Assembly (NCBI GenBank): GCA_002269645.1 | Contig: NIVC01000405.1 | Span: forward strand, 314,173 to 378,172 | Source: Macrostomum lignano | Taxonomy: Eukaryota | Length of the DNA stretch: 64,000 nt | Direction: 5' to 3' | In this document: positions 26,770 through 64,000 of the stretch, one piece after another | Layout of the letters: each line of letters begins with the position of its first letter | Position numbering within the stretch: position 1 is the stretch's first letter | Made by a program: the position numbers and the translations under genes | Notes under the pieces: generated by a model | What the model was told of the DNA's origin: nothing | The model's database searches: none | Seen by the model: the letters and a program-made list of their open reading frames with translations, nothing else

Positions 26770-26991
26770 AAGCCGATGCTTAGAGCTAGGCGAAGCATCC
26801 GGATGCAGCGAGGAGGCGTTGCCCCCCCCCCATTTTGCTAACCCCTAGCGACCACGGGCTGCTAATCCGGTGGTGCTGGTGTCCGCAGCGCGGTCCACCT
26901 CCGGAGAGTCCAGGAGGTGGATGGTCGCTCGCCCGGTAGCCCTTAGGTAGCGGACGAGCTGGCAGAGATTCTCGGGCCTGAGGCGAAGCAT
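26770..26991 (-). mobile_element. 3' end remnant of an RNase H-type non-LTR retrotransposon (I/Loa/R1 group)
   Basis: Minus translation LRPENLCQLVRYLRATGRATIH...; shares motifs (GGATGCAGCGA, AATCCGGTGGTGC, ATGGTCGCTCGCCC, AGAGATTCTC) with the longer remnant at 52155-52810. Confidence 0.55.
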
Positions 26992-27125
26992 GTCGTATTA
27001 TTAATTAATATATAATTATAACATAAAAGACATATAATTAATGTCTTTTTGTCATTGCCGCCAATAATCTCAAAAGCGACTTCTACTACAATGTACATAA
27101 CTGGGGACATCATTAATTATTTTAG

Positions 27126-28359: not shown

Positions 28360-28444
28360 GTGGGTTCAGTTTAAACTATTTTTTTACCATGACTGTCTCG
28401 ATTTACCAAAACCCGCAGCTTAAGCTCAGGCCAGTTGGTCAGTT

Positions 28445-28990
28445 GTTTGGCCAGCCTCCCAGATCCTCAGTTGCTGGGCTACCATCCTCCCAGATCCTCA
28501 GTTGCTGGGCTACCAGCCTTCCAGATCCTCAGTTGCTGGGCTACCAGCCTCCCAGATCCTCAGTTGCTGGGCTACCAGCCTCCCAGATCCTCAGTTGCTG
28601 GTCCAGCCTCCCAGATCCTCAGTTGCTGGTCCAGCCTCCCAGATCCTCAGTTGCTGGTCCAGCCTCCCAGATCCTCAGTTGCTGGTCCAGCCTCCCAGAT
28701 CCTCAGTTGCTGGTCCAGCCTCCCAGATCCTCAGTTGCTGGTCCAGCCTCCCAGATCCTCAGTTGCTGGTCCAGCCTCCCAGATCCTCAGTTGCTGGTCC
28801 AGCCTCCCAGATCCTCAGTTGCTGGTCCAGCCTCCCAGATCCTCAGTTGCTGGTCCAGCCTCCCAGATCCTCAGTTGCTGGTCCAGCCTCCCAGATCCTC
28901 AGTTGCTGGTCCAGCCTCCCAGATCCTCAGTTGCTGGTCCAGCCTCCCAGATCCTCAGTTGCTGGTCCAGCCTCCCAGATCCTCAGTTGC
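28445..28990. repeat. Intronic minisatellite, 28 bp CCAGCCTCCCAGATCCTCAGTTGCTGGT, about 19 copies
   Basis: Direct periodicity; the same unit recurs at 32205-32585. Confidence 0.95.
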
Positions 28991-29061
28991 GGGGCCACCG
29001 CCGCCACCCTTTCAGACCCTATCGTATCTAACCAACAAGACATTCCTCTATCCATTTCCAG

Positions 29062-29156
29062 GCTGTCAGTCGCACAGCAAAGACTTCCCAGTTCGCGGCT
29101 ATTCAGGCATCGGTCGCGACGAAACGAAGGCTCGACCTCGTATGCCGCCGCAGTGA
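29062..29156 (+). CDS. KMT2E: KMT2E-family probable last coding exon
   Basis: CTAAC branch-like motif and TTTCCAG acceptor; phase 1 join gives GCQSHSKDF...PPQ-stop; AATAAA at 29229-29234. Confidence 0.55.
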
Positions 29157-29879
29157 GCGAAATCCCTGTGCGTCATTGCCTGCCTGCCCGTAATTGTGAA
29201 GCCATTATTGTTCCGAGTATGTAGAGTAAATAAAATACTATTTGCGTTTTTACTGTGCTGCTTATGGTTAAAACATGACTCCGCGGTAGCGCTTGAATGA
29301 AGCATACGCCTCGCCTGTACAATGTACATTCTGGTTTTGATCCTCTGTCCCTCCGTCTCATACTACTGTTTATTTTGCGTGAAACTCTACATGTACAGTT
29401 ATATACATTATATAATTAATTCTCTTGAATCATTCTCCATAACAAACTTCATTAATTAGCATTAACTATGAGTGAATCCCGTGTACCAGATGTACGTATA
29501 AATTCAATAAATTTCTTTACACATTTGCTAGGATGCACAGTAAATAGGGGCAGCTATGCGAGCGGTTTATTTTCAACAATTGTATAATTGGTATGCAATT
29601 AATAGATAAATTTTATAGTAAGGATATTAATCGGTTAAACCAAACCAGCTGTTTCTAAAAGGGAATTTTTTTGTTTCTGTTGCGAACTTAACATATTTAT
29701 TATGATTATATTTATGAACTTACCACCCGTAACTCCCTGCTTTGTAATTACTTAATTAATTAAATAAACTAATTCTAAAATGTAATCTGTTTCCTTATTT
29801 GTAAATTGTCCTCATTTGTCCTCATCCTGTGCTTTCTTTTTGCATTTTTATACATCTGCTTAGCTAGTTTTATCTTATT

Positions 29880-45219: not shown

Positions 45220-48200
45220 GTGATGAGGACGCACTTTTTCCCAAATCCCGCGCTAGCACATGGGCTTTGAACTTACTAGCCTACTAACAGTGGGCGAGGG
45301 GTATTTTTATCCTTTTTCTGCGAATAGTCATAGAATCTATACTAGATATAATGTCTGGCCATACTAGTAGTCATAATAACATAGGCGCAGCTTTTTGGGT
45401 CGTAAATCATCGCTTTCGAAGCTGGTCTGACAGCCACCTGCGCCTCACTCAGTGTTGAGACGGGCGCCAGATGGTCTGAGAGGATGCGGGCGGTAGCTTT
45501 TTTCTCATCATTTTGAAGGCCATCAAGATTTATGAGGTCAGAGCCTATTGTTCGGATTCACTCAAGCGTGTGACAGCTTTGACAGCTATGCGTTTTACCC
45601 CTAAAAGTACTTTGGGATTAGTGATTAGCAATTTCGCTTCATTATCTTCACTTTCTATTTAATAAGAGCTTTCTAATGTATATTTTTTCATTAATTTCTG
45701 TCAATCCTACGCGAAAAGTCATAAATCATTTTGTTGCGATTTTGAGTGATTTATGGCCGCACCTGTCATCTTTTTACGACCCCGTGAAACTGATAGGATC
45801 TCTCGGTCACGTGATTCTGGGTAGCAACAAGCTTAGCCAATCAGAAAATTCGGCGCTCATTTTAACAAAACGGCTCAGCCAATCAGAATCGACGTGTTCC
45901 ATTATAACAAACTGCGGTCCAGTTGGCGGCTATTTAAACCGGAGTTTTTGGCCCACTCGGACCTCATCCTGGCTAAGACTTGCGCCAACCTCCTGGGGCT
46001 TTAGCCTAGCTTGAGACATCCCGGAGCGCGACCGTCGTTTCTTGATCCCCGGATTGCGACTTCCCCCCATCATCATCAAGGACGAATCCCCCGGTCGACA
46101 GCAGCGAACATCAAGCGAAGATCATCACCTGCTAGCTATCAGCGAAGATCGTGACAGCATCATCCCGAGTCTACAGCTACAGAGCATCAAGCCGATTCGG
46201 TCACTGTGGATTACCTGGTCTCCGGCTGTTGAGTTTCTGATTGGTTGGGTGAGAGGCTACCTAGACTTGCTTGATTGGTTGATCCCCTATCTGTCCCCTG
46301 TTTCAGTAGCTGAATTAGGCGCACACTTTTGCTCATTTTGTTCAGTAGTGCTGTTATTGAGGCAGAAATCACTTATAATACTGCTAGTAGTCTGAAACTC
46401 CAATTCAATCTGAGGTGTGAAGAGATCTAAGGAGAAGGTTAAATCTAACAGTTATTTTTATCGGTTTTATTTCTTTGTTCGCCGATGGCTCAGATGAGTA
46501 GCTAAGCTAGTAGGCGCCGGTCACAGTGGACCAATGGCAAGGCAGTTCTCAGTCGATCAATCAATCAAATCAGTGAGCAAAACTGCCAGAAGTGCAGAAT
46601 CGGCGCCAGAGATGTACTTTGTGCACTCTAGGTTAGCCAAGCGGCTCGGGTAATGAATCATGCGGTCTCTGAAGTTCGAGTTAGTCTATCATCAGCGCTA
46701 TAAGAGGCTTGTTGGCGCGTTGAAGGTCAAAAGTACATATCTTCGTATTTAGCAATGTAATAGTACATGTAGCTACCCCATAGACTCGCCACTGCAAGAA
46801 TCCCCTGCACAAGTCCCCTCTGTACCTGCATGGCCAATGCGATCTAGTCCCAGCCGTGTCCCTTATCATCGGCTATGACTTCGAGATTGACATCAAAAAG
46901 ACACTAGTTGGCAGGTAGTGCAAAGCCCCTTCTAGTCGGAAGCCCGATTTCGAGAGTCCCGGTGTGGTGAGCCAGGGCGCACGGGCTGGTGGCAGCGAGT
47001 TAGCTTAGTCTGCGGATTAGCTAATTTCTACCTTTAAAATTCTCCCTGCTTGTCTCTCGCTGTCCCTTTCTTAGCTATAGGACCTAGACTGCTCGCCACA
47101 CGATCAAGCTACCATGGGGCTGACCATCTGACAGGAGTGGGGGGCCAGGACTCTAATTGATTCATTTCTGAGACCTGAGGCCCGAAGGCTTCCTCACAAG
47201 GGGCCTGAAAGGTCGAAACCCCTCATAAAGGAGAAATATGACTAATATATGTAAGTGAAAATAAATTGATATTATTGAAGTACTCGCTGGTTGCTTCCCG
47301 GATTAGGCCCTTGCGGATTACCTTAAGTCTCGAGCCTCTTCAGTGGGAAGTTCTCTTAGCTCTCTCAGTAGCGTAGGTAGTGCTGCCACCAGTTCCTTCA
47401 GGTCTCAGCCTTCGGTGAGGTGAGCTTCCCGTCGGAACGAAATAATGAAGTCAACGAACTCAGCACCAGGTGCAGATATGCAGTTCAACGTACAAGGCGT
47501 CTCGTCAGCAGCACCTGCCGGGCTTGGATGGTACAGGGAGGGCTGAGTTAGCCTCTCGCAGGCTTGGGGTGTGCTTTAGTAGGGTCTCAGTCGGACCAAT
47601 AAGAACAGATTCAATAAACGCAGTCGGGCGCTCAGTCAGACGCCAACGCACACAGGTCTTAGAACTCGGGAATCAAGAACTGACACTAAGCAGAAACTCC
47701 TTGACGGAAACAAGGGGGAGAGGGGTCCTATTTATAGCCGGAAAACACCCGCGCACAAGACCTCGTGACTTGTTCTATTTTTAGAACTGACGTCACTCGA
47801 GAGTCTCGGGCAGGGTACAAGCGCGCGGAAGACCTCGTGACTTGTTCTATTTTTAGAACTGACGTCACTTGAGGGTCCCCGGCAGAGTGCACATGGCTGT
47901 GACTCAGTTGCTATTTTTAGCAACATGAGTCACTCCTCTCCTTAGAGAAGGGAGGGTACCGAAAGCATGTGACTCATCCGGTAAACAGGGCCAGCAAGTG
48001 CAGTAAACATGTTTACTGCACTTTAAGACTCAGAGAACGCAGAAACTGTCATGTGACCAGCTCACAAGACAGGGAGACAGAGACTGACGAAACAAGGACA
48101 GCCCGCAACAGAGAAGTTGCGGGCTGAGAAACGCAGGGCAACACGGGCAGAAGAAAGGGAGGGGGCAGCAACAGACAGCCAAGAGGAGGGAAGCGGGAAG

Positions 48201-48244
48201 CTGACTAGCGGCAGACAGCAACCCAGGGCGAGGGCGAGGGCAAG
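45220..48244. repeat. Left arm (3.0 kb) of a large inverted repeat
   Basis: Reverse complement of 48537-51514, checked at both ends and at many internal points. The ORF track shows mirrored identical ORFs (47470-47784 +/48997-49311 -, 47732-47926 -/48855-49049 +). Confidence 0.95.
45732..46450 (+). mobile_element. LTR-like segment (TGTT...AACA) with two CCAAT boxes and a TATTTAAA box; mirror copy at 50331-51032 (-)
   Basis: Inverted TGTT/AACA termini, AGCCAATCAG twice, TATTTAAA at about 45931. No TSD found. Confidence 0.4.
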
Positions 48245-48505
48245 TCGTTATATATTTTTTGTTTCTAAATAGACTTGGAAAGTAATTTGAGAGGACAGGT
48301 CTGTAGGTTTTTTTGAATAAGGTAAGCGCTTTTGTAGTATTTAATATTGGTGCTGGTTGTCTAGCTTTCGGCTTAGTTCTCTTTCTCTATATATGTGCAG
48401 GTGCTTTTTCACTAGAAGTTTCTCATTGTTAAAGCTTAATCGGGGGGTTTATTTTTGAATAGTATAGTATAGATAGAATTAATAATGTAGTGATCCGCTA
48501 GTTAA

Positions 48506-49531
48506 TGTAAGGCGTCCCACTTTGTCAGCAGTTTCCCTTGCCCTCGCCCTCGCCCTGGGTTGCTGTCTGCCGCTAGTCAGCTTCCCGCTTCCCTCCTCTT
48601 GGCTGTCTGTTGCTGCCCCCTCCCTTTCTTCTGCCCGTGTTGCCCTGCGTTTCTCAGCCCGCAACTTCTCTGTTGCGGGCTGTCCTTGTTTCGTCAGTCT
48701 CTGTCTCCCTGTCTTGTGAGCTGGTCACATGACAGTTTCTGCGTTCTCTGAGTCTTAAAGTGCAGTAAACATGTTTACTGCACTTGCTGGCCCTGTTTAC
48801 CGGATGAGTCACATGCTTTCGGTACCCTCCCTTCTCTAAGGAGAGGAGTGACTCATGTTGCTAAAAATAGCAACTGAGTCACAGCCATGTGCACTCTGCC
48901 GGGGACCCTCAAGTGACGTCAGTTCTAAAAATAGAACAAGTCACGAGGTCTTCCGCGCGCTTGTACCCTGCCCGAGACTCTCGAGTGACGTCAGTTCTAA
49001 AAATAGAACAAGTCACGAGGTCTTGTGCGCGGGTGTTTTCCGGCTATAAATAGGACCCCTCTCCCCCTTGTTTCCGTCAAGGAGTTTCTGCTTAGTGTCA
49101 GTTCTTGATTCCCGAGTTCTAAGACCTGTGTGCGTTGGCGTCTGACTGAGCGCCCGACTGCGTTTATTGAATCTGTTCTTATTGGTCCGACTGAGACCCT
49201 ACTAAAGCACACCCCAAGCCTGCGAGAGGCTAACTCAGCCCTCCCTGTACCATCCAAGCCCGGCAGGTGCTGCTGACGAGACGCCTTGTACGTTGAACTG
49301 CATATCTGCACCTGGTGCTGAGTTCGTTGACTTCATTATTTCGTTCCGACGGGAAGCTCACCTCACCGAAGGCTGAGACCTGAAGGAACTGGTGGCAGCA
49401 CTACCTACGCTACTGAGAGAGCTAAGAGAACTTCCCACTGAAGAGGCTCGAGACTTAAGGTAATCCGCAAGGGCCTAATCCGGGAAGCAACCAGCGAGTA
49501 CTTCAATAATATCAATTTATTTTCACTTACA
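48506..49531 (+). mobile_element. LTR-like segment (TGTAAG...CTTACA), 1026 bp; mirror copy at 47250-48244 (-) lacks the first 31 bp
   Basis: 6 bp inverted termini, 72 bp-spaced enhancer-like direct repeat, TATAAATA at 49045-49052. No TSD or PBS identified. Confidence 0.5.
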
Positions 49532-51514
49532 TATATTAGTCATATTTCTCCTTTATGAGGGGTTTCGACCTTTCAGGCCCCTTGTGAGGAAGCCTTCGGG
49601 CCTCAGGTCTCAGAAATGAATCAATTAGAGTCCTGGCCCCCCACTCCTGTCAGATGGTCAGCCCCATGGTAGCTTGATCGTGTGGCGAGCAGTCTAGGTC
49701 CTATAGCTAAGAGAGGGACAGCGAGAGACAAGCAGGGAGAATTTTGAAGGTAGAAATTAGCTAATCCGCAGACTAAGCTAACTCGCTGCCACCAGCCCGT
49801 GCGCCCTGGCTCACCACACCGGGACTCTCGAAATCGGGCTTCCGACTAGAAGGGGCTTTGCACTACCTGCCAACTAGTGTCTTTTTGCTGTCAATCTCGA
49901 AGTCATAGCCGATGATAAGGGACACGGCTGGGACTAGATCGCATTGGCCATGCAGGTACAGAGGGGATTTGTGCAGGGGATTCTTGCAGTGGCGAGTCTA
50001 TGGGGTAGCTACATGTACTATTACATTGCTAAATACGAAGATATGTACTTTTGACCTTCAACGCGCCAACTAGCCTCTCAAAGCGCTGATGATAGACTAA
50101 CTCGAACTTCAGAGACCGCATGATTCATTACCCGAGCCGCTTGGCTGACCTAGAGTGCACAAAGTACATCTCTGGCGCCGATTCTGCACTTCTGGCAGTT
50201 TTGCTCACTGATTTGATTGATTGATCGACTGAGAACTGCCTTGCCATTGGTCCACTGTGACCGGCGCCTACTAGCTTAGCTACTCATCTGAGCCATCGGC
50301 GAACAAAGAAATAAAACCGATAAAAATAACTGTTAGATTTAACCTTCTCCATAGATCACTTCACACCTCAGATTGAATTGGAGTTTCAGACTACTAGCAG
50401 TATTATTAAGTGATTTCTGCCTCAATAACAGCACTACTGAACAAAATGAGCAAAAGTGTGCGCCTAATCCAGCTACTGAAACAGGGGACAGACAGGGAAT
50501 CACCCAATCAAGCAAGTCTAGGTAGCCTCTCACCCAACCAATCAGAAACTCAACAACCGGAGAGACCAGGTAATCCACAGTGACCGAATCGGCTTGATGC
50601 TCTGCAGCTGTAGACTCGAGATGATGCTGACACAATCTTCGCTGATAGCTAGCAGGTGATGATCTTCGCTTGATGTTCGCTGCTGTCGACCGGGGGATTC
50701 GTCCTTGATGATGATGGGGGGAAGTCGCAATCCGGGGATCAAGAAACGACGGTCGCGCTCCGGGAACCAGAAGTTGCTTGCTGGGCCCGAGCAAGTTGGA
50801 GTCCGAGCGGGCCAAAAACACCGGTTTAAATAGCCGCCAACTGGACCGCAGTTTGTTATAATGGAACACATCGATTCTGATTGGCTGAGCCGTTTTGTTA
50901 AAATGAGCGCCGAATTTTCTGATTGGCTAAGCTTGTTGCTACCCAGAATCACGTGACCGGGAGATCCTATCAGTTGCCACAGGGTCGTAAAAAGATGACA
51001 GGTGCGGCCATAAATCACTCAAAATCGCAACAAAATGATTTATGACTTTTCGCGTAGGATTGACAGAAATTAATGAAAAAATATACATTAGAAAGCTCTT
51101 ATTAAATAATCACTAATCCCAAAGTACTTTTAGGGGTAAAACGCATAGCTGTCAAAGCTGTCACACGCTTGAGTGAATCCGAACAATAGGCTCTGACCTC
51201 ATAAATCTTGATGGCCTTCAAAATGATGAGAAAAAAGCTACCGCCCGCATCCTCTCAGACCATCTGGCGCCCGTCTCAACACTGAGTGAGGCGCAGGTGG
51301 CTGTCAGACCAGCTTCGAAAGCGATGATTTACGACCCAAAAAGCTGCGCCTATGTTATTATGACTACTAGTATGGCCAGACATTATATCTAGTATAGATT
51401 CTATGACTATTCGCAGAAAAAGGATAAAAATACCCCTCGCCCACTGTTAGTAGGCTAGTAAGTTCAGAGCCCATGTGCTAGCGCGGGATTTGGGAAAAAG
51501 TGCGTCCTCATCAC
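48537..51514. repeat. Right arm (3.0 kb) of the large inverted repeat
   Basis: See left arm; 292 bp unique spacer at 48245-48536. Confidence 0.95.
48758..49052 (+). promoter_or_regulatory. Putative U3-like enhancer/promoter: Fox-type palindrome, 3 AP-1 sites, 2 CRE sites, TATA box
   Basis: 28 bp perfect palindrome 48758-48785 containing GTAAACA/TGTTTAC; TGA(G/C)TCA at 48805, 48849 and 48875; TGACGTCA at 48914 and 48986; TATAAATA at 49045. Confidence 0.5.
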
Positions 51515-52154
51515 TTTCAAATATTATATTTTATACAATTTTGTTATCACCTGATTAATATCTATATAATTTATTTTTATAACCTATGGGCTAAACTGTT
51601 TTGCGCAATATCGCCAACTACATACATTATTTCACGCAATACTTGTTTAACTCCTTGCTTTTTCTTTCACTTCGTTAGTCGTCCAAAATTTCGTCAACAA
51701 CATTTACGCGTTCTTTCAAATACCATATTACTAAACTCGTACAATCGTAATTACATGTAAATAACTAATGCTAAAATATTGCCTTCTGTTCCTGAAGTAA
51801 TCTTAAATACACAGAAATATATTGGCCAAACAGGCTTCTTGCCTGAGCCAAACTTACTACTACTACTACTACTACTCAATAGCATATCCAATAAAAATAC
51901 TACTTAGCAGCTTTAGGACTGATACTATTCTTTCTTATGGTTCAGTTCCAGTCGAATCTGCTTGGTCCGAAATTTTAAGGGTTCAAAAAAAAATAAAAAG
52001 TATTTATTTGCGTTTAAGTTTAATCATTGTCCATCTCTGCTGATTTTACACGTACGGATGCACAGATAATTTATGTACGACATAGATGTAGAATGTACCT
52101 TTGAAGCCCCCTATTTTATCAAGAATTGTTGACTTACATTGACAATTGACTTAA

Positions 52155-52810
52155 TTAATTACATACAGGAGGTTCCGAGCAGGATGCAGCGATTGGAGGC
52201 GCGCGTTGTTGCCCCCCCATAATTAATACCGCATAGTGCTGCGGTGTCGCGCAGGGAGATGCCAATCCGGTGGTGCCGGTGACGTGCCGCGATCGTCCTA
52301 GAGAGTTCCAGTGCAGGAGGGTGCACGGATGCATGGTCGCTCGCCCTCTGTAAGCTTTGGGATCAGACGAGCTGCATGCAGCCATAGGCAGAGAGATTCT
52401 CTAGTCTGAAATTTTTAACGTCGGAGAGGTCTGGTTTTGGGCCGAGGTAGGTGAGCCAGTCCTGAGTAAAGCCGGGCATTCACAGACGAAGTGCTTCGCA
52501 TTCTCGACACCGGAGAGGCAGAATGGGCATTCCTCGCTACACATTTTTCCCTAGAGGTGGCGATGCCGGGCAAAACAGCCATGACCCGAGAGGCGGGCCA
52601 TGGGCCGGTCACCGCTCTTGATGTCCCTATGGTTGAGACCAAGCAAGGCCCTGCGAAGGGCGGGGGGAGGGCAGGGGACAGAGGACAGGATTGCCGGCAG
52701 TCGGGGGCGTTAGCCCACCTGATCTCCGGTGCTCTGAATTCACCGGCCGTAGGGCAACCAGTAAAAAATCCGGCCGAGCCAGTCTTGGCCAAGCGATCGG
52801 CCAACAAGAA
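52155..52810 (-). mobile_element. Degenerate 3' part of an RNase H-containing non-LTR retrotransposon (RNase H end + CCHC knuckle)
   Basis: ADRLAKTGS (RNase H C-terminal motif) and, in another frame, LSGHGCFARH...ECPFCLSGVENAKHFVCECPA...YLGPKPDLSD. Confidence 0.7.
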
Positions 52811-54124
52811 TGTTGTATACGCGACTTTAAGTGTTAAGAACTTAACTTACGGTTTAAAGAATGTACATGAGTAGTATTTGAATCCTTTCTTTTGGACGCC
52901 TAGGACTTCCTTCATTTCAATACACGCACGTACATACGATTTGTACAGCTGTCACGTTGTTGATGTAGTGGCTATGGCTATCGCTAGGACCCTTAAAAGG
53001 GCCGTTTTGACGAGAGTTGCCGTAAGTCGTAGTCCCAAAATGAATCGAAGTCAATTCTTGTAAAGCGGGTTGTGTAGCGGAGCACTTGGCGATAAAGGCA
53101 GGAAACTGCCGTAGTTGATTTATTGTTGAGATCAATATTAGGACTGGTTACTGACAATATAAAACTTATAGCGTTATGGGCACTGGCGGCTGCAACAATG
53201 GTTTTGAAGGCAATAGAATATGAAGTCAGTGGCAGACGAAGGATACAATGGCGACGCAACGCGGTGAGTAATGGCGTTGAGCACAGTGAAGGCGGTGAGT
53301 AGCAAGTAGACAGGCAGATGAGTAGTGGCGAGATTGGCGTTAGCCGTGGTGGCACACAGTGAAGTAACAGTGTAAACAGGCTGGCCCAAACAGAGGGGCC
53401 GTGGCGAGAGATAAGGAGGCTTGAGGCAGCCAGACAGTCTAGACAGGGGGGCCGCGAAGACAGAAGGGACGCGATGGCAAGAAGGTGAAAAACCCCCCAG
53501 CCCGCCGCCAGGCGGAGGCTAATAAAGGAGCGCAAAGGGTTAGCATAAAACACGGAGAGTTATCATTGGCTGGCGGGGGAACTTGAAATTATCGATCGTG
53601 CAAGTTTTCTACGGTCGCGCGAAAGGATAGCAAAGTACGTGGTGAATTAGCGATTGACACAGATTCGTTGCGCGCTACTACAAGTAAACGTTAGAATAAA
53701 CGATTGGAAAATTTAAAATGAGAAACTGCAGAGAAACTGCAATCCAACGGCCCTTTTGAGGACACACCCCAAAATGACAACGTCACACAGCGGTTAGGGC
53801 TGGTGGAATATATATTTTGTGCTGTGTAAAAGTGTAATAATAATACTAATTAAGACTTTTAACACTGAAAATAATTAGAAAAAACAACTAATTACACAAG
53901 AGTTTACCCTTTACAATCAGATACATTTTACGAATGTACATGTAAATAGAGAATAAAAAGAATATATATGTAGTAACTTGTTGAGTATTCAGTACGCACA
54001 GGAACGCATCATAGTATATCTACATGTAAATGTGAACGTACTTTAAAGCGCGCACTTAAAATAAATAGACATCACTTACAACAACAACAACAACAGAGTA
54101 CGCTGCCAGTTCACAAAAGCAGCG

Positions 54125-57100
54125 TCAGATGGCGCGCTTCAAAGCTTGGGCGCGAACAAAAGCCGCACCGCCGGCAGAGTCCGGGGCGCCGGCGTCAGCC
54201 AGCAGACAGTCGACGTAGCGCCGAGTCTTCGCCTGTCCCCGCCGGTAGGGTGCCTGCAACGTAAGTAGCAGCACCTCCTGCACCGGCTCCGGACAGTAGG
54301 CCTCGGCGCGGATGACGTGGCCTGCCAGCTGGAGTCGCCGACGGCGCAGCAGATCGCTAGGACGGGCCAGGCCGGCGCGATGATAGAGCGCCGTGTTGGT
54401 GACTCGCTCGTTGCCGATCTTGAAGGCGGCGCGCAGCAGGCCAGCGTGCGCCGCGTCGACTTGAGCCTCGAGCGAGTCTGTCAGCGTCCAGGTCTCGGCG
54501 TTGTATAACAGGACGGTCTCGATCACCGCCTGGAACAGCGCCGCCCTCTGGCGGTCCGGTAGGGCCTCGGACTGCAGGACTGACCTTATAGAACGAAAGG
54601 CAGCCCAAGCAAGTCCTCGGCGACGCCGCAGATCCTCGCGGACGTCGGGAACCAGACCGCCGAGGTAGACGAACTGCTGACATCTTGGAAGCTCACTCGC
54701 CTGTCCGTCAGCGCCTCGGCAGAAGATTGCAGCCTCGGTGTCGTCCGGCACGCATAGCACGACGGTCTTCTGCGTGTTGACCACCAGGCCGACGCTCGCC
54801 GCAACGGCAACCAGCCTATCCAGCTGTCGTTGGGCGCCCTCGACGGTCGAGGACAGCAGGGCGAGGTCATCGGCGTAGCCAAGCACGCTGAGCCGTCTCT
54901 CCGGTTGGCGTCGACCCACGCGTCGCCGCAGCAGGAAGCCGTCGTCGTTGGAAGGCAGAGCAGTCCGTAGCACCCAGTCAAGCACCAGAATAAATAGGAA
55001 CGGCGCTAGCGTATCTCCCTGGAGCACCCCGGAGGATGTCTCGAAGAAATCCGATAGGCCGTCCGGTGTTGAGACAGCAGCCGTCGTGCCGTGGTACAGC
55101 GCCATGACAGCAGAAATCAGCAGCTCTGGCACGTTGTACGCACGGAGCACCTCTGGGAGCGCGTCCCTCACGACCGAGTCGAAAGCCTTCCTGAAATCGA
55201 CGAAGATCAGGATCAGGGTCAACTGGCGGATGCGCGCCTCCTCGATGACTCGTCGAAGAGCCAGGATCTGCGTCACTGTGCCGCGATGGGGCCGGAATCC
55301 GTTCTGCTCAGGTCGCAGGTACGGGTCCAGCACAGGCTGTAACCGCGATAGCAGCATGCGGTTGAACAGCTTCGCGGCGCAGGACTGTAGGCAGATGCCT
55401 CGATGCTCCTCGAGCTTGGTGGTGCCCGGCTTCTTTGGAATGGCGACGATGTGCGCCGTGGTCCATTCGTTTGGCGCCACCTCACCGAAAAGCACGCGGT
55501 TCATCACTCTGGCGACCTCAGTGGCCACGCAGTGGATCCGCAGCGCCTCGGTGGGCACCTCGTCCGGACCAAGCGCTTTGCCGCCTGGCGACTGCCGAGC
55601 GAACTTCACAACGTCGGCTGTGCTGACTGGGGCAACATTGAAGCTCTCCTCCGCCGGCAACGGCGTCTCCGGCGGCAGCCTCAGATTTTCTGGAAGCGGA
55701 GGGGGCGGCGCGTTGACAATGGCGGCGAAGAACTCGCGCAGCTCGTTCCTGCGCTCATCCGGAGTGTCGCCTGCCAGGTTGAGCGCGATGCGCCGCTTTC
55801 GCCCCGTCAGAGTGTTGATGGCGGACCAGGCCACGCGCCCTCTGGCATCGGGCCCTGCGGCAGAGACGGCTTGGATGGCGTCATCGACAGCGGACTGCTG
55901 CCGCTGCAGGTAGACAGCCGCCAGAGCCTCCTCCGCCTCGCGAGTTGGCCGCCCACTCAGTCGGAGCCTCTCCAGATCTTCCCTCGCTTCGTCGATCGCG
56001 GGGTCGTCCTGCCAGACCGGCTGCCCGCGCTGGGCCGGTCGCATCAGCGGGACTGCTTGCTCCGCAGCGGCTCGAACTGCAGCGCTCACCTCCGCGTACT
56101 CGGCTCCTCCACGCTTGTCGCCCAGCGCAGTGACAAAGGCACCGGCAAAGCGACGTCGCGTCTCGGCGTCCCTGAGCGCGCGGTAGTAGCGCCGCGGTGG
56201 CCGCTTTGGCGGACGGTAGAGCGGGTCCCGAAGCCGAAGGTCGCAGATGAGCAGCCGATGGTCGGACCGCAGAGCCAGCGGCGTAATGGTGTGGCAGTTG
56301 GTGACGCGGCGGCGCTCACGAAAGCGCACAAGCACGTGGTCGAGCTGTGCCAGCCTCCGCGTAGCGTTCCGGCCGCGCGCGTTCCGCCGCCTCCGCTTGC
56401 AGCCCACGAAGGTCGCGAGCCTGCCCGGTGACTTGCGGAATCTGGTGTTGGCCGACACCATGTCCTGTCTCTCCAGGAAGTCCTCTAGCGCTCCGGTGTT
56501 GCCGTTCTCGCGCGCTGTCACAAACAGCGATCGCTCGGACCTACGCAGAACTGCGTTCAGGTCTCCGAGAATGACCACTGTGTCACGTTGCGCCATCTCC
56601 TCCACCCGCACCGAGAGTTGCTCGAAGAAGGCCTGAGCCTCATCGGAGCGGGTAGCAGGCGGCGCATACGCGCAGAACAGGCGGGTGTTCCGGCCGCGAA
56701 GCCGGACGTCGACCCGAAGCAGCCGAGAAGACAGGGAGATGCAGCGACAGCTCTGCTGCAGCCTCGGTCCGATCAGCGCTCCAACTCCTCCACGGCCTCG
56801 CTCATCCGCTGAGGTGTACCAGAGTGTCCAACCGGCGCCCAGGTCCTCACAGTGAAGTCCGGGGTCGGCTCTGATAGACACCTCCTGTAGTGCGATGACA
56901 TCACAGCTGAGGTCGAGCGCTAGCCTCGCCAGCAGCCCTCTCCGCCATGTGGCCTTGAGAGTGCGGCAGTTCAGCGTCCCGACCCGAAGCGTGCCCTCTG
57001 GTACGGCTGGGGCTCGATGCTGGTGAGCCTCATGGTCCCCGGCGCCACCCGGAAGATCCAATTGGGCCAGCGCAGCAGCAGCTCGGCGGGCGGCGCCACG

Positions 57101-57241
57101 TTGCCGACCTCGCCAGTTTCGCTCGCGACGGCGTTCAACTCGCCGACGCGCGCTCCGCTGCCCTCGCTTGGTCCTGCCGCATTTGGCCGCCGCAGCAGTT
57201 AAGCGCGGCTCTCCACTCTCACCACGAGGAGGTAGCGGCAT
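54125..57241 (-). CDS. RTE LINE ORF: APE endonuclease + reverse transcriptase, 1038 aa, uninterrupted
   Basis: EN motifs GTLNCRTL, IALQEV, CAYAP, GDLNA, LDHVL, SDH; RT motifs QNGFRPHRGT, FVDFRKAFDSV, GVLQGDTLAPFLF, YADDLALL, FVYLG. Confidence 0.96.
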   Translation of the reverse strand: MPLPPRGESGEPRLTAAAAKCGRTKRGQRSARRRVERRRERNWRGRQRGAARRAAAALAQLDLPGGAGDHEAHQHRAPAVPEGTLRVGTLNCRTLKATWRRGLLARLALDLSCDVIALQEVSIRADPGLHCEDLGAGWTLWYTSADERGRGGVGALIGPRLQQSCRCISLSSRLLRVDVRLRGRNTRLFCAYAPPATRSDEAQAFFEQLSVRVEEMAQRDTVVILGDLNAVLRRSERSLFVTARENGNTGALEDFLERQDMVSANTRFRKSPGRLATFVGCKRRRRNARGRNATRRLAQLDHVLVRFRERRRVTNCHTITPLALRSDHRLLICDLRLRDPLYRPPKRPPRRYYRALRDAETRRRFAGAFVTALGDKRGGAEYAEVSAAVRAAAEQAVPLMRPAQRGQPVWQDDPAIDEAREDLERLRLSGRPTREAEEALAAVYLQRQQSAVDDAIQAVSAAGPDARGRVAWSAINTLTGRKRRIALNLAGDTPDERRNELREFFAAIVNAPPPPLPENLRLPPETPLPAEESFNVAPVSTADVVKFARQSPGGKALGPDEVPTEALRIHCVATEVARVMNRVLFGEVAPNEWTTAHIVAIPKKPGTTKLEEHRGICLQSCAAKLFNRMLLSRLQPVLDPYLRPEQNGFRPHRGTVTQILALRRVIEEARIRQLTLILIFVDFRKAFDSVVRDALPEVLRAYNVPELLISAVMALYHGTTAAVSTPDGLSDFFETSSGVLQGDTLAPFLFILVLDWVLRTALPSNDDGFLLRRRVGRRQPERRLSVLGYADDLALLSSTVEGAQRQLDRLVAVAASVGLVVNTQKTVVLCVPDDTEAAIFCRGADGQASELPRCQQFVYLGGLVPDVREDLRRRRGLAWAAFRSIRSVLQSEALPDRQRAALFQAVIETVLLYNAETWTLTDSLEAQVDAAHAGLLRAAFKIGNERVTNTALYHRAGLARPSDLLRRRRLQLAGHVIRAEAYCPEPVQEVLLLTLQAPYRRGQAKTRRYVDCLLADAGAPDSAGGAAFVRAQALKRAI

Positions 57242-57260
57242 TTATCTGCACCGTGGTGCA
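57175..57260 (-). ncRNA. HDV-like self-cleaving ribozyme core at the RTE 5' end (P1 5' strand not found)
   Basis: Minus strand: TGCCGCT (P2) ACC (P3) TCCTCGT (L3) GGT (P3) GAGAGT (P1 3') GG (P1.1) AGA GCCGC GC TTAACT GC T GCGGC (P4) G GCCAA (J4/2) ATGCGGCA (P2, one bulge). Confidence 0.7.
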
Positions 57261-57367
57261 AATAAATTAAGACGCAAATAAATTAAGACGCAAATAAATT
57301 AAGACGCAAATAAATTAAGACGCAAATAAATTAAGACGCAAATAAATTAAGACGCAAATAAATTAAG
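57258..57367. repeat. 16 bp tandem repeat GCAAATAAATTAAGAC, 6 full copies plus a partial, at the LINE 5' end inside the TSD
   Basis: Direct periodicity. Confidence 0.92.
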
Positions 57368-57622
57368 AAATTATCACTTAAAATGTAAGCATACAGTACA
57401 TATAGAAATTAAGAAATTTCATTTCATCTCCAAGGTGCATGCATCAGCGCGGAAGGATTTATTTGGCTTGCAGGTTAAATTCTTCCAGAAATTTGCCCTT
57501 AAGTTTGCGCTTCAGACTTGACTGTGGATGCGAGAAGAATTTTTTGCTTGCTTTTACGTACATGCATATTACGCCAACGCTGATGCCTGTACAATGTACA
57601 TGTAACTAAATTGCATTGCACT

Positions 57623-58213
57623 AGAGGCGCCAGCACCAGAGGCGCCAGCACCAGAGGCGCCAGCACCAGAGGCGCCAGCACCAGAGGCGCCAGCACCAGA
57701 GGCGCCAGCACCAGAGGCGCCAGCACCAGAGGCGCCAGCACCAGAGGCGCCAGCACCAGAGGCGCCAGCACCAGAGGCGCCAGCACCAGAGGCGCCAGCA
57801 CCAGAGGCGCCAGCACCAGAGGCGCCAGCACCAGAGGCGCCAGCACCAGAGGCGCCAGCACCAGAGGCGCCAGCACCAGAGGCGCCAGCACCAGAGGCGC
57901 CAGCACCAGAGGCGCCAGCACCAGAGGCGCCAGCACCAGAGGCGCCAGCACCAGAGGCGCCAGCACCAGAGGCGCCAGCACCAGAGGCGCCAGCACCAGA
58001 GGCGCCAGCACCAGAGGCGCCAGCACCAGAGGCGCCAGCACCAGAGGCGCCAGCACCAGAGGCGCCAGCACCAGAGGCGCCAGCACCAGAGGCGCCAGCA
58101 CCAGAGGCGCCAGCACCAGAGGCGCCAGCACCAGAGGCGCCAGCACCAGAGGCGCCAGCACCAGGGCGCCAGCACCAGAGGCGCCAGCACCAGAGGCGCC
58201 AGCACCAGAGGCG
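57623..58213. repeat. Near-perfect 15 bp minisatellite (GGCGCCAGCACCAGA)n, about 39 copies
   Basis: Direct periodicity; one unit near 58163 lacks a base. Confidence 0.97.
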
Positions 58214-58233
58214 GTGATATGTGATACGTGAAA

Positions 58234-58653
58234 CTAATTGAGAAAAACAGTTTGCATCGATAGGTTTCTTACCGATGTACTTATCACGCCAGCCAACTTG
58301 CAGTGCACTGTTCTCGACTGCACCAGCGTATCCTTGTGCTCGATAACCAATCGGACTAGCAGATCTTCACGGTCCTCTCGCGCCTTGCAATGCTCAATTA
58401 ACAAGTCAATCTCGCTAGCGTCCATCTCAGCGTCCAGCATGTCCGTGAACCAGCCGCGAATGCGTTTCTCTTGATTTTCGTCCGGCACTTCTTCGGACAG
58501 GCCACAGTCGCTCAGCAGCTGCAGATAGAGACTCTTGGCTAGAGCGTCGAAGTTTGCAGCGTAGAAGTCGTCGTACCGGAGCAGACGCCTCGGAAACTGG
58601 ATGACGCCAGTTGGCAAAAAGTCAAATCGGAACGGCAGGGCGTGTGGTGCTTC
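58234..58653 (-). CDS. Ankyrin-cGLR gene, probable last exon (may instead splice out at GTAAGA, 58272)
   Basis: CACAG acceptor at 58654, phase 0 with the preceding exon; open to the stop at 58234. Confidence 0.6.
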   Translation of the reverse strand, partial: EAPHALPFRFDFLPTGVIQFPRRLLRYDDFYAANFDALAKSLYLQLLSDCGLSEEVPDENQEKRIRGWFTDMLDAEMDASEIDLLIEHCKAREDREDLLVRLVIEHKDTLVQSRTVHCKLAGVISTSVRNLSMQTVFLN

Positions 58654-58859
58654 CTGTGATGAAATATTGGTTTTGATGGTGTTGAGCATCAACCATGTAG
58701 CGCATCAACTCACTGTACGGCACTGAACTACTCTGTAAGGCCCTGTTTGGACTGAACCGCTGGGACGGCTGGGCGGTCACCATGGCGCTCACCATAGCGC
58801 TCACCAGGCTATTGCTGCTTCGCTAGGCATCGCTACCTCCAGGGAAAATCCTTAGTGAG

Positions 58860-59070
58860 GAATGAGGAAATGCCCTTTTTACCTCCCCGGTGCTGAGAAT
58901 GTCGAGCACAATTCTTCCGTGAATGCCCTGCCATTAGCTCGGCCCAAAACCGGATCTCTCCGACGCGTTCAGATCAAAGAATTTCTGCCAGCACCAGCAC
59001 TGCGGACACAGGACCTACCGGATCTTCCCGCGCGACACCACAGCACCAGCTTCAAGTTGTTACCATGCAG
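58860..59070 (+). mobile_element. Third remnant of the same RNase H-type non-LTR family (CCHC knuckle region), inside an intron
   Basis: GAGGAAATGCCCTTTT...CGTGAATGCCC...CTCGGCCCAAAACCGGATCTCTCCGACG resembles the reverse complement of about 52420-52540. Confidence 0.6.
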
Positions 59071-59403
59071 GGGTTGGCGGAATAGGCGTCAACCACCCCG
59101 CTGCTCATACGAGCGTAGCCCCTGCAGCTACGAGTATGTAAGATGAAGCATTTACTCTAGCTCGAAAAATAGCCTTGAACGTTTTATGGCCTAATCTCAA
59201 TAATGACATGTCAATAAGGCATGTAGCTTTGTAGCATGTAGCATGTAGCATGTAGCTTTGTAGTAATAAGGCATGTAGCATGTAGCTTTCCCTCTTAAGC
59301 GTACATGTAAAAAACAATTTCAAGATTAATTCGTGACTACTTAGGCTCTAAACAATGAATGGTACACTGAATGGCAACTAAAATTTTGCTTGAAATTAAT
59401 CAC

Positions 59404-60246
59404 CTGGACAAAGCAGAACCGCCACGCCGAGTCATTTTTTAGCAGACAGTGCTGCACAGACGATTCGCTGTGCATGCTAAAGCTGCTGTAGTGCAGAGGA
59501 ATGCCACGCAGCGGCCGATGACCAGATAGAAGCAGCTGAGACAGTTTCTGCAGCGCCTCGCCTGGCTGATTGAATCGCATATAGGCCAGGGCGGCGAGGC
59601 ATTCGCGCGTCGTGCGAGCATAGTCAGGCAGTTGCTGGATGTCGTTCAGTAGCGCGTTCAAATTTATCCGACAGTGGACTCCAGCCCCGACAGATAATTC
59701 GCGAAGGAAATGCCGCACACGCTCGTGCAGCTCGTGGTACTTCGGCTGGGCGGTAGGCTTAGATTGTGGCGGCTTCTGTCGGGCGGAGTCCTTAGAGCCG
59801 AGAATCTGTTTAATCTGCTTACTGCGAGGTAGCAGCATAAACGGATGATAATCTAGTGCCGCGTTGGGCCTCAGCGGCTGCAAGTGACCTAAAAACTCAG
59901 TGAGAACTTGGTCAAGGCTATTCCTGACATCTAGAACCGCTCTCAGAGTAGGTCGCTTGTCATCTGCGCTGCTCGGTAAATTGTTCGACCGCTTCAGGTA
60001 CAGTGGTGAATCGTTGAAGAAGAAACTATGCATGCCGATTCCAGGACCAGTACGTCGCAGGTCCTCAGCTAGCTTGTCCAACGCCTCAGCCGTTAGTTCC
60101 GGAAGTCGTTCCGGTCGCCATTGGTCCGGCGGTGTCTCCCGCAACATGCGAAATGCGAGAGTCTTGGCGTGGAATGATTTTAATTGTCCGCCACGTTTGT
60201 TGATGACCCGTTTGAATAGGTACTTCAGAATTGTGTACAGTTGACC
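59404..60246 (-). CDS. Ankyrin-cGLR gene exon: Mab-21 C-terminal helical domain and tail
   Basis: GQLYTILKYLFK...LKSFHAKTLAF...WRPERL...LDKLAEDL...HSFF matches the Mab-21/cGAS C-lobe pattern; CAG/GTG boundaries, phase 0. Confidence 0.8.
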
Positions 60247-60340
60247 CTGCATAAAGTACAGAGATTAACTGCCTAATTTCAGGAATTTAGAGAGCATAAC
60301 TTTATGCACTGTTAGACAGAACATGTACTTTAATTTTTAC

Positions 60341-60639
60341 CTGTACATCGGTAAAGCTGCGTACTAACAACAGTTCCAACCATTTAGTGCTGATCCGCAA
60401 CTGCTTGCCTTCCATATCCGGTAGGGATGCACCAACAAGTGGACAAGCGTTGGGCAGCTCTGTCGCTTCTCTGAGCTGTTTAAGTAGCTGGGGAGATAGG
60501 TAGCTTGGAGATTCAAAAATGTCTACTTTGGGATAGGCGCAACAGCAGTACATCAGAGCCATGTCCATCGCGGGACGCCCCAGACAGCCGTATTGGGTGC
60601 GTGCCGGATGAGCCGCTGCAATGATAATTGACATTTCTT
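60341..60639 (-). CDS. Ankyrin-cGLR gene exon: third catalytic Asp strand and CxLV...RIS...E motif
   Basis: AMDMALMYCCCAYP...ACPLVG...LRISTKWLELLL; phase 1 acceptor at 60640, phase 0 donor at 60340. Confidence 0.8.
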
Positions 60640-60738
60640 CTAAGGTATTTAATAATGTATATACTTGCTGTTAATTTTGGTTTAAGTATTCAAAAGTACA
60701 AGCTGAACTTTAGTTCAGAAAATTATAGAGCAACTCAC

Positions 60739-61154
60739 CGTAGCCAGAAAACCAAACGTGCCCCTTTTCGTACTTAAGAGTTGTCTTATCCTCGTTTTCA
60801 GTGTTTGCCGCTAACTCATCAGCCCTTTCGTCGCTAGTTTCAGCAGCTGATTTGTTAATGCTCTTCACACCGACATCACTGTTGCATTGGCACTTTCCCG
60901 ATAAATGATACAACCGATCGTCCACGTATTCCGATATGTCGATATCCGAGTCTTCGTCCACTCGACCACCCAGTCGACAAACTGAGCTGCCCCAGCCTTC
61001 GGCGAAGCTGCCGCACAGATGCAACCGCTTGGACGATTCATTATTTGAATAGTTACTTATGAGTCCTTGCAAGTGATCGGCAACGGCAGCTTGTAGCGAG
61101 GCTCGACCATAAACGAATCCAGAATCGACCAGAGCTTTGTGAAGGCGAAGACCG
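60739..61154 (-). CDS. Ankyrin-cGLR gene exon: nucleotidyltransferase signature
   Basis: GLRLHKALVDSGFVYGRASLQAAVADHLQGL...LCGSFAEGWG...DEDSDIDISE (hGS...DhD); phase 2 acceptor at 61155, GTGAGT donor at 60738. Confidence 0.85.
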
Positions 61155-61705
61155 CTTTGTAAAGTAGAATTTTGGATGCAGAATAAAATTTATTATTGAA
61201 GTGATTCATGTAGTTTATCATGTGGCTAGATAGAAAAGAGGTTGTAAATACACATATAAACAATTAAATGCGTCAACGCATTTGATAAGATACGAGCGTT
61301 GAAATCTTGTATCAAGATATGTACATGTGTGACGGTGTCCCTTCGGTCGTTATTATATTTGGGGGTTAATCACTTTCTGTAATCATTCGGGACATCTATT
61401 AAAGTGTAATTTAACATCTGCTCACGCTGCTTAAGAAAGGTTTGTAAGAGTAGCGTAGGAAATTGGCTGACATTTGTTTTACCATTTAAGTTTTGCAACT
61501 ATACGAGCTATAAACATTGAATTAGAACTCAAATTGCATTAACCTGAGTCATTTAGGCTTTAAGTGCTACAGCCCTACGATCGCTGGAAGTTCAGATAGT
61601 CACATTTAGCGTTAACTTCCCAAGTCATTCTTGCCTATGCGTTGGCTTTGTTATTTCGGTATTCGTCACACATGTACTATACACAATTCTAAACATTGCT
61701 CTTAC

Positions 61706-62520
61706 TTGACTTTGGTGCCAGAAACGGATGTGAGTTGCTTTGGTTGAGATATTCTGTCTATTGGGTCGCCGTTATTTGACGGGTAATCGTCTGCTTCTTG
61801 AAAGCATTTCAATAAGGGTGCCATGTAGCTGCTGGGAAAGTCGAAGCAATGTTTAACAAGTCGTTGCGCACAATCTATGTGCTGGAACAGGACAGCTACG
61901 TCTAGCGACGTCAGCTGATGCCGATGCTCTATTTGCAAAGGATCTGCCCCTTCCGACAGCAGTACACCGAGCGCTTCCGCGCGTCCGCACATTGCCGCCA
62001 GGTGGAGCGGCGTCCAGCTGTCTGCCAGTGGTGGAGCGACCATCGCTCCGGCTTTCAGCAGGCAACGCACGACTTCGGCGTCTCCAGTCCAAGCCGCGGC
62101 GTGCAACGGCGTCCAGCCACGGCGAGCTTTGGCCTGCACCGGAGCGTCAGTTTGGGCCAATAGGACTTTAACAACGTCTAGTCGGCGAAGCCGACAGGCA
62201 ACATGAAGCGGCGTCCAGCCGTCGTTGGACATTATAGATTGGGAGGCGCCATGCTCAAGTAGCAAGCGTACAACACCTAAATGGCCGCGGTGCGATGCGT
62301 AATGAAGCGGCGTAACTCCCTAAACGCTATCGCGAAGATTTACAGTGGCTCCAGCTTCTATCAGCGCCTTAGCAGCGTTGCCATGACCGCTGTCTGCCGC
62401 GTGATGCAACGGTGACCAGCCCTTGGTATCCTGCAGGTCCAGATTGGTGCAAATGGACTTCTTGGCCAGTTGCGAGACCACCGACTCGTGACCGCGACGG
62501 GCTGCGGCGTGAATCGGTGC
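61706..62520 (-). CDS. Ankyrin-cGLR gene exon: about 7 ankyrin repeats; in-frame TAG at 62320-62322
   Basis: APIHAAARRG, WSPLHHAADSG, VTPLHYASHRG, WTPLHVAC, WTPLHAAAWTG, WTPLHLAAMCG, LTSLDVA; TTTCAG acceptor at 62521, GTAAGA donor at 61705. Confidence 0.8.
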
Positions 62521-62593
62521 CTGAAATGTACTTTAAGATAAGGTACATGGATCAGGTACCTGCAAGTTATGGAAACTCACAATCAAAACTGAC

Positions 62594-63164
62594 CCATCCT
62601 AGTAGATTGCGAATGTTGACGTCGATGTCTTCTGTTTTGAGTAAGATGCGCACTGGCTCCGGAAGCCCCAGTGGGCTGCGACGTGCAGCGGGTAGACTGT
62701 CGATCATCCACCGCACTGACCGTAGCTCCGCCGGACTTCAAGAGTTCACTAACCAGATCGGCTTTGTTTTTCTCGCATGCTGCGTGTAGCGGAGTTCGAC
62801 CATCTCGATTTGACAAGTCCACGATTGCGCCAGACTTCAGCAACAGTTTTGCTGGAGTTAGCTGGCCTCTCAGAGCTGCAAGGTACAATGGAGTGGCTCC
62901 GTCCTTGTCGCGGGCGTTCACCGCGAAGGCTCTGTTGATTCCATCGCGTTGAAACAGTTCAAGCAGCTCCTTGACTGCTTCACTGTTGCCTAGTAGAGCT
63001 GCTTCGTGTAACGGCGTGCGATTATTGAAATCATTGCGACACTTCTGCAGCTGCCGAGGGTTTAACATAGGCAGAAGGTTTTTCAGCTGGCTAATTTGAT
63101 TCTGTTGAATGGCTTTTAGTATGGCCTTGCAGATCGACATCGAATGCAAAATGTCGTGCTTCAT
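62594..63164 (-). CDS. Ankyrin-cGLR gene, first identified coding exon: about 4 ankyrin repeats; two 1 bp deletions near 62661 and 62691
   Basis: RTPLHEAALLG, ATPLYLAALRG, RTPLHAAC. Adding one C at each of two C-runs restores STPLHVAAHWGFPEPVRILLKTEDIDVNIRNLLGW, which joins the next exon. The start codon is uncertain. Confidence 0.72.
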
Positions 63165-64000
63165 ACTTTCGCGCCTTTTTTCAGAGCATTCTGCATTCAA
63201 TAGTGGGCTTAATATGTTCCTTTACTGCCTGTTCTAGCAGCAAAGCTGCGTACTGAATTTGTACACACCCTCAAAGCGTTCTCTAATAGCATAGGTCGGA
63301 CCACACCAACAAGAAGAATGAGCACGTACTCATAATTAATGCACGGCTTTTTGACGTAAACCCTACCCCCTGTAGGAATTCTCAACACTTTATAGCCAAC
63401 TACAAACGTATCACATTGCACTGTACAGGTCAATTTTGATCCACACGGATGCATGACTCATACCAAACGAACGGTGTAATTAGGAACGAAAACTATCCTA
63501 CAACTTGGTGTCTAATATTTTTTTGTAAATCAGCTATAACAAGCAATTAGCCTACCCATTGTATTATGAATTACGAATTTGAGCAGAAACTCAGAAAGAA
63601 GACGAAAAACTGCTGTTGCTATAGAAAATAATAAACTCTGATTTGATCTCCTTGAATACTTGTGCAAGCTTGCCTGTTCCAAAACGAACGTACAATCGTA
63701 CAATGAGCAGCATATGTTAGAGTTTACATCAGGAAATGAGTGGACAACATGTTGCTGAGTGTATTAACTTTTGTCAATTATGAGTTGCTTCCTTTAAAAT
63801 TATTAATATACGAGGAGTGTCCCAAAAGTAGTTTTAACTAGATTTGACTTAACTGGTCATTGGTCTCAAGTTCAACGGCTAAAGTGGATTTTATAGCAAC
63901 AACAGTTAAATATGATGCGAAGCACCGAAAAATCTTTATTTTTATTTCTACTATAAGCTTCAGCCAAATCGAAGTGTACTTAGTCGTGTGGACAAGAACT

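Follow-up and report, generated by a model that had tools for sequence, protein, structure and literature searches.

Background

Among the major families of innate immune sensors are the cGAS-like receptors (cGLRs), most of which have no known activating ligand. Described here is a gene that joins ankyrin repeats to a cGLR/Mab-21 nucleotidyltransferase (NTase) core, the annotated gene BOX15_Mlig026362g1 of the flatworm Macrostomum lignano (product PAA83814.1, 822 amino acids (aa)), which lies on the reverse strand of a stretch of 64,000 nucleotides (nt; hereafter the window, whose positions are used throughout). PAA83814.1 is encoded on scaffold NIVC01000405.1 of assembly GCA_002269645.1 (Mlig_3_7), of which the window is the final 64 kb; window positions 47219-64000 were 100% identical to the contig end.

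In the survey of Li et al. 2023 (PMC9980059), 87% of cGLRs were stand-alone enzymes, some carried tetratricopeptide or ankyrin repeats, and ANK-cGLR was a named architecture class, the ankyrin repeats of which were suggested to serve protein-protein or protein-ligand interactions. Nematodes and most platyhelminths had Mab21-like proteins only, and the Mab21L1/2/3 genes in the tree, which have developmental roles, were without a predicted functional active site. The supplement includes M. lignano Ank_2-bearing cGLRs, PAA68216.1 among them (Table S2), and five M. lignano constructs, #89-93, cloned for the biochemical screen (Table S3); PAA83814.1 was not found in the accessible parts of the supplementary tables. 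The 15 active enzymes of that study came from insects, anemones, molluscs, hydras and corals, so that none was from a flatworm. A preliminary description of the locus, made from the sequence alone, had suggested a protein-triggered cGLR pathway in a lineage for which it knew no characterised example, and the claim of novelty must be withdrawn in view of the published class and its M. lignano examples. The kind is known and the lineage represented, and the locus adds one further, unusual member.

On the evidence given below, BOX15_Mlig026362g1 is one member of a large lineage-specific M. lignano expansion, built of an ankyrin array, a cGLR/Mab-21 core and a C-terminal domain of ~250 aa, and is probably a truncated but maintained copy with a likely product of 822 aa.

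Relatives in M. lignano and beyond

Relatives were collected by exhaustive HMMER search with the 405-aa core as query, using 50% clusters as representatives. Of the 119 representatives that the search returned, 77 scored E<=1e-10, which excludes chance as an explanation of what was read from the sequence. All sampled clusters at E<=6e-8 (9/9) were from M. lignano. Weaker matches were cGLRs of bivalves, a brachiopod and a sea anemone (the nearest outside the genus being bivalve, brachiopod and cnidarian), and one relative from outside Macrostomum carries the NCBI name 'cyclic GMP-AMP synthase-like receptor 2'.

The motif GS[FY][AS][DE]xW[GAS] was present in 92 of 146 sequences and was followed by SD[IV]D in nearly all. 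Ankyrin motifs were found upstream in most long family members, and many relatives, at 900-1,500 aa, place long ankyrin arrays before a common GSxxEGWG...SDIDx motif. The nearest cluster, PAA68216.1, was only ~33% identical, and BOX15_Mlig026362g1 is a divergent member of the family.

Nucleotidyltransferase core

The NTase core (GSFAEG...DSDID), third Asp (AMDMAL) and Mab-21 helical lobe (LKSFHAKTL) previously read from the letters were all found in the conceptual product. The active-site string is LCGS-X20-DIDI-X81-MDM, with G224-S225 encoded at 61012-61007, D246 at 60946-60944 and D248 at 60940-60938, and with D332 as third acidic residue. This conforms to the general cGLR pattern of a G[S/G] loop and an [E/D]h[E/D]-X50-90-[E/D] triad (G224-S225, D246-I-D248, 81 residues, M-D332-M); the triad is complete, and the incomplete active site of non-catalytic Mab-21 proteins of the MAB21L1/2 type was not found. 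Among 44 aligned family members, G was retained in 41, S in 39, D246 in 38, D248 in 38 and D332 in 34; these counts argue, at the level of sequence, that catalysis would be kept up in the M. lignano ANK-cGLR family.

An AlphaFold2 model built with the 44-sequence family alignment had a predicted local distance difference test score (pLDDT) of 84.3 and a predicted template modelling score (pTM) of 0.85. In this model the GS loop comes after strand beta1 (220-223), and strand 246-260 opens with the DxD. The best Foldseek match in the PDB was oyster Cv-cGLR1 (8gjw; E 4.6e-7, probability 1.00, template modelling score (TM) 0.56 on the target, 376 columns), and human cGAS was matched as well (5vdv; TM 0.52, alignment of 395 columns). 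The fold check against cGAS that had been recommended agreed with the domain assignment, and the predicted structure is homologous to known cGLR/CD-NTase (cGAS/DncV-like nucleotidyltransferase) enzymes.

A sequence profile of six proteins (this one and five published M. lignano cGLRs) was searched against PDB sequences and matched cGLR1 8gjy (E 5.6e-9), cGLR1 8gjw (6.4e-5), many cGAS entries (~2-7e-4) and MAB21L1 (0.028). The 8gjw profile alignment sets the third catalytic Asp on VDLVPA of Cv-cGLR1. Sequence profiles aligned only the third-Asp strand and the helix bundle with known cGLRs, and hhalign of the family profile against a coral cGLR profile aligned the helix bundle alone (72.8% probability), so the match of the N-terminal lobe (N-lobe) rests on Foldseek, motif spacing and secondary structure. 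Models in PADLOC and NCBIfam matched only the ankyrin part of the protein, so that none for bacterial CD-NTases, those of cyclic-oligonucleotide-based anti-phage signalling systems (CBASS), was matched.

An acidic insertion (NKSAAETSDERADELAANTENEDKTT) of ~27 aa in the N-lobe (residues 271-297, window 60800-60880) was without counterpart in the aligned paralogues and was predicted to be disordered (pLDDT <50). The isoelectric point (pI) of the core is 8.46, just under the value of >8.5 that Li et al. 2023 associated with nucleic-acid sensors, and the ligand class (nucleic acid or other) is for that reason not decided by it.

C-terminal domain

The preliminary description had left a C-terminal region of about 300 aa unassigned. 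The region exists and is conserved in paralogues (RLPDCA..ARE.L.AL..LKFG ... DSAWKFCF ... NFDAL); its length is nearer to 250 aa. A local profile of it matched 74 of 266 collected proteins, and the matches sampled by name were from M. lignano; the named non-Macrostomum cGLRs and generic ankyrin proteins among the 266 were not matched. A database search with the C-terminal profile returned four M. lignano fragments only, the word filter having evidently passed over full-length paralogues. Modelled alone, the domain (pLDDT 87.7) consists mainly of helices with a small sheet. Foldseek searches gave a best E of 0.2 in the PDB, with weak tetratricopeptide-like matches (NprR/Rap) at TM <=0.42, and no match among viral models; a profile search of PDB sequences also gave no match. 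This family-specific helical domain is the sole unexplored part of the protein: earlier work trimmed its tree sequences to the cGLR domain, and the C-terminal domain seemingly went unaddressed there.

In UniRef, fragments of this C-terminal domain in five related proteins carry unrelated automatic names ('MRP-S28 domain-containing', 'DNA primase', 'F-box protein', 'Terpenoid synthase'), which probably stem from gene models of the older ML2 assembly that are fused or incomplete.

Gene model and exon structure

The sole strong match of the NTase and C-terminal part was an M. lignano 'Mab-21 domain-containing protein' (98% identity), the 90% cluster of which includes PAA83814.1. PAA83814.1 was reproduced exactly by joining 62232-61706, 61154-60739, 60615-60341, 60246-59404, 58653-58273 and 57245-57219. 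The Mlig_3_7 annotation was made from RNA sequencing (RNA-seq) with StringTie/TACO and a de novo transcriptome (PMC5730564), and the junction between ankyrin and NTase exons consequently rests on transcripts. As had been supposed, ankyrin and NTase exons lie in one gene model; the outcome that would have refuted this, two separate genes, was not observed, and the fusion of a cGAS/Mab-21 NTase to ankyrin repeats is upheld by the complete triad, the cGAS-like predicted fold and a single transcript-based gene model that spans both parts.

Six phase-compatible exons had been proposed. All six have canonical AG/GT borders; their joining does not give a single open reading frame (ORF), which is obtained only after repair of two frameshifts and one TAG, and two borders were corrected. 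Exon 1 as first proposed (62594-63164; ATG start, GT donor) encodes the N-terminal cap, ankyrin repeats 1-4 and the first residues of repeat 5, and lies outside the deposited coding sequence (CDS). Exon 2 (61706-62520; AG acceptor, GT donor) carries the array from repeat 5 to repeat 11 and the linker that leads into the NTase domain; PAA83814.1 has the 3' part of this exon (62232-61706) as its first coding exon. Exon 3 (60739-61154) encodes the N-terminal lobe of the NTase core, with G224-S225, D246, D248 and the acidic insertion unique to this gene. Exon 4 as annotated (60341-60615) carries the third catalytic Asp, D332 (60565-60563, PAMDMAL); its acceptor at 60615, 24 nt later than the 60639 first proposed, is favoured by the paralogue alignment (...GHVWFSGY|AAHPAR vs GYASKPSK and GFASSPAR in relatives).

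The C-terminal domain is divided between two exons, its first half in exon 5 (59404-60246) and its second in exon 6 as annotated (58273-58653); exon 5 also encodes the Mab-21 C-terminal helix bundle (GQLYTILKYLFKRV...LKSFHAKTL...DQW). The junction of exons 5 and 6 (FCFVQ|EAPHALPFRFDFLP) agrees with paralogues (DSAWKFCF...F.FLP) and is confirmed by the conservation of the C-terminal region across the family. Exon 6 does not end at 58234 as first proposed; it is spliced from the GT donor at 58272 to a terminal mini-exon (57219-57245; INAATSSW*), which overlaps the start codon of an adjoining retrotransposon ORF. The unspliced exon 6 frame continues to a stop at 58236-58234, a TAG, and the deposited CDS stops at TGA. 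An alternative downstream exon (57462-57521; SSLKRKLKGKFLEEFNLQAK) is used by gene models from ML2. All of these exons are on the reverse strand.

Ankyrin array and its lesions

Tandem repeats of ~33 aa with the TPLH helix-turn-helix signature were found 11 times in the conceptual product. Pfam Ank_2 and Ank_4 match the deposited protein, and the N-terminus of the model superposes on designed ankyrin proteins (DARPins) in the PDB at about 1 A root-mean-square deviation (Foldseek). The expectation of about 11 ankyrin repeats in about 1,100 aa was accurate for the conceptual product (1,121 residues, 11 repeats) and not for the deposited one: two of the repeats carry lesions, and because of two frameshifts and an in-frame TAG, all on the reverse strand, the 1,121-aa product exists only after three repairs.

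Frameshift 1 (62690-62692) is a CCC run one base short for ...DDRQS-T-PLHVAAHWG, as determined by three-frame translation and piecewise reconstruction, and frameshift 2 (62661-62662) is a CC run one base short for ...HWG-F-PEPVRILLKTEDIDVN; the two frame changes in exon 1 fall within 30 nt of each other. The TAG (62320-62322) lies in exon 2 inside ankyrin repeat 7 (NLRDSV*GVTPLH), and the ATG that starts the deposited 822-aa protein (MSNDGWTPLH...; 62230-62232) is 88 nt downstream of it. Approximately 7 of the 11 repeats lie upstream of the stop codon, and about four are retained in the deposited protein. All three lesions fall within the first 847 of 3,366 coding nt (P ~0.016 under random placement), and the ~2.5 kb of coding sequence after them reads open and keeps every catalytic residue.

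An intact allele or paralogue was sought with the repaired N-terminal ankyrin region as query, and only generic ankyrin proteins were retrieved (best 43% identity, none near-identical). The frameshifted exon-1 ORF was looked up by exact match in public assemblies with two possible starts and neither was on record; the lesions are for that reason without independent confirmation.

The three lesions could be assembly or polishing errors near the scaffold end, the true gene then encoding 1,121 aa with 11 ankyrin repeats, which we consider somewhat unlikely. Each frameshift is a C homopolymer that lacks one base, an error typical of PacBio consensus sequence, and the two lie 1.3-1.7 kb from the scaffold end; the upstream repeats are otherwise perfect ankyrin repeats, and paralogues usually have long arrays. 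Pilon polishing was, however, carried out with Illumina DNA and RNA-seq reads (PMC5730564), the TAG is a substitution and not an indel, the annotators' ORF begins after the TAG, and no database protein model spans the upstream repeats at high identity.

A second account, less probable and in our view unlikely, makes the entire locus a pseudogene in decay: a redundant copy, in a genome of recent polyploidy, that is still transcribed without giving a functional protein. In its favour are the two frameshifts and the nonsense codon in the 5' third, a full-length non-LTR (long terminal repeat) retrotransposon that follows directly downstream and reaches into the annotated last exon, the differing 3' ends of the gene models, and the extensive duplicated sequence of M. 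lignano (PMC5730564). The confinement of the lesions to the first quarter of the CDS speaks against this account, as do the intact downstream ORF and catalytic residues, the origin of the gene model in expression data, and the copy in ML2, which differs at only 1 of 405 residues. A truncated but maintained gene is favoured over both a young pseudogene and assembly errors.

An alternative genetic code for TAG was considered and rejected on reading, the adjoining long interspersed nuclear element (LINE) ORF and the long exons being normal in the standard code and the unspliced frame of exon 6 itself stopping at a TAG. The first ATG is separated by 836 nt from the scaffold end at window position 64000, so that the promoter region may be incomplete, and near this end the consensus quality over exon 1 may be poorer than elsewhere.

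Proposed function

The product most likely made by the truncated gene would have 822 aa and comprise about four ankyrin repeats, a linker, the cGLR core and the C-terminal domain. By analogy with cGAS and cGLRs, ligand binding would reorder the GS loop, the enzyme, once switched on by its ligand, would make a dinucleotide, cyclic or linear, from two nucleoside triphosphates, and this signal would be read by a receptor. The ankyrin array, and perhaps the C-terminal domain too, may be ligand-binding, partner-binding or regulatory modules; more speculatively, either could bind the ligand or hold the enzyme off. In the preliminary description the ankyrin array, as sensor or autoinhibitor, was supposed to stand in for the nucleic-acid-binding surface, which is equally speculative.

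A further proposal is that the Macrostomum ANK-cGLR family forms a separate branch of cGLR signalling, in which a protein or other non-nucleic-acid ligand would act via the ankyrin array, the receptor would be other than canonical STING, and the C-terminal domain would supply a new kind of module for regulation or effector coupling; we hold this to be doubtful and give it a low probability. That the protein serves as a Mab-21-type scaffold without catalysis (as MAB21L1/2 or MiD49/51 do), with an NTase fold used for binding and ankyrin repeats for protein interaction, is very unlikely, since the complete GS...DxD...D triad is retained in about 80-90% of paralogues, Mab21L1/2/3 were described by Li et al. 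2023 as without a predicted functional active site, and cGLR and cGAS outscore MAB21L1. In favour of a scaffold are the weak profile match to MAB21L1 and the fact that no M. lignano cGLR was among the enzymes active in the published screen.

Several observations weigh against a maintained, catalytic ANK-cGLR. Enzymatic activity has been demonstrated for no M. lignano cGLR, this protein included; five were cloned by Li et al. 2023, and their phylum is absent from the 15 active enzymes. The strict cGLR motif h[QT]GS, X8-20, [DE]h[DE]h does not fit, as Cys stands in place of Q/T; the spacing, at 20, is the longest that the motif allows. It fits 8 of the 146 family sequences, and M. lignano proteins accepted in that study read VMGS, ILGS and VFGS and likewise depart from the strict form. 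With the NTase and C-terminal part as a single query sequence, phmmer retrieved only a chance RecR match from the PDB, and the precomputed Pfam matches of PAA83814.1 are to Ank families only. The lesions, the LINE immediately downstream and the chimeric last exon fit a decaying copy, and the parasitic flatworm Schistosoma mansoni is without cGAS and STING (PMC10855445).

Most flatworms lost cGLRs, and M. lignano expanded an ankyrin-fused form to dozens of genes. M. lignano is also a transgenic laboratory animal amenable to RNA interference, so that ligand and receptor discovery is practical in it. This opportunity is a property of the already published family and not of BOX15_Mlig026362g1, a divergent and probably truncated copy.

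Neighbourhood of the gene

Immediately downstream of the cGLR gene comes a non-LTR retrotransposon (54125-57241, reverse strand; guanine-cytosine (GC) content ~63%). Its intact ORF of 1,038 aa encodes a reverse transcriptase and an exonuclease-III-like endonuclease and has its start codon inside the annotated last mini-exon of the cGLR gene. Two tandem repeats sit between exon 6 and the retrotransposon, a perfect 15-nt repeat (GCACCAGAGGCGCCA, 39.8 copies) at 57618-58213 and a 16-nt repeat (6.9 copies) at 57258-57368, and the annotated mRNA splices across both. An inverted duplication of ~3 kb (45220-48244 and 48537-51514), with arms 97.6-100% identical and 292 nt between their inner ends, could be a genuine palindrome or a long-read assembly artefact.

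Two long overlapping ORFs in different frames (553 and 481 aa) at 37611-40548 on the reverse strand resemble one gene, in which a Walker-A P-loop (GETGSGKTTLINS) is followed by a stretch rich in Cys; searches with them gave generic ATPase P-loop matches only and no relative in the PDB. By reading of the sequence, a large multi-exon gene at 17509-29224 on the forward strand has a PHD-like Cys/His stretch and a SET-domain-like exon (20344-21222), and a prefoldin-like ORF lies at 1944-2429; the former gene ends in a tandem protein-coding repeat at ~28.4-29.2 kb (PRSSVAGPASQILSCWSSLPDPQLLVQP). Low-complexity tandem repeats at 1207-1866 and 10769-13257 produce long artificial ORFs in several frames, and the stretch at 10-14 kb has a very strong negative GC skew (-0.45 to -0.2).

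Comparison with known systems

MAB21L1 and MAB21L2 share the Mab-21 fold and a weak profile similarity (E 0.028) with the M. lignano protein, which in contrast retains the triad and has extra domains. The ANK-cGLR fusion of Li et al. 2023 (Fig. 4C) is alike in joining a cGLR core to ankyrin repeats; it is from another phylum and was compared by description only, with no evidence of shared origin. Cv-cGLR1 (Crassostrea virginica, 8GJW) and human cGAS are alike in the bilobed NTase fold, the GS loop, the three acidic residues and a C-terminal helix bundle with a ...YH.KT...W motif, at ~15% identity; the M. lignano protein adds ankyrin repeats and the C-terminal helical domain. The closest known proteins are the M. 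lignano ANK-cGLRs of Li et al. 2023 (PAA68216.1, PAA86972.1, PAA45980.1, PAA68676.1), which share the species, the layout of ankyrin array, cGLR core and C-terminal domain, the GSxxEGWG...SDIDx motif, and 30-35% identity over the core and C-terminal domain. From these catalogued proteins BOX15_Mlig026362g1 is set apart by its unique acidic insertion of ~27 aa and by an ankyrin array that is mostly cut off.

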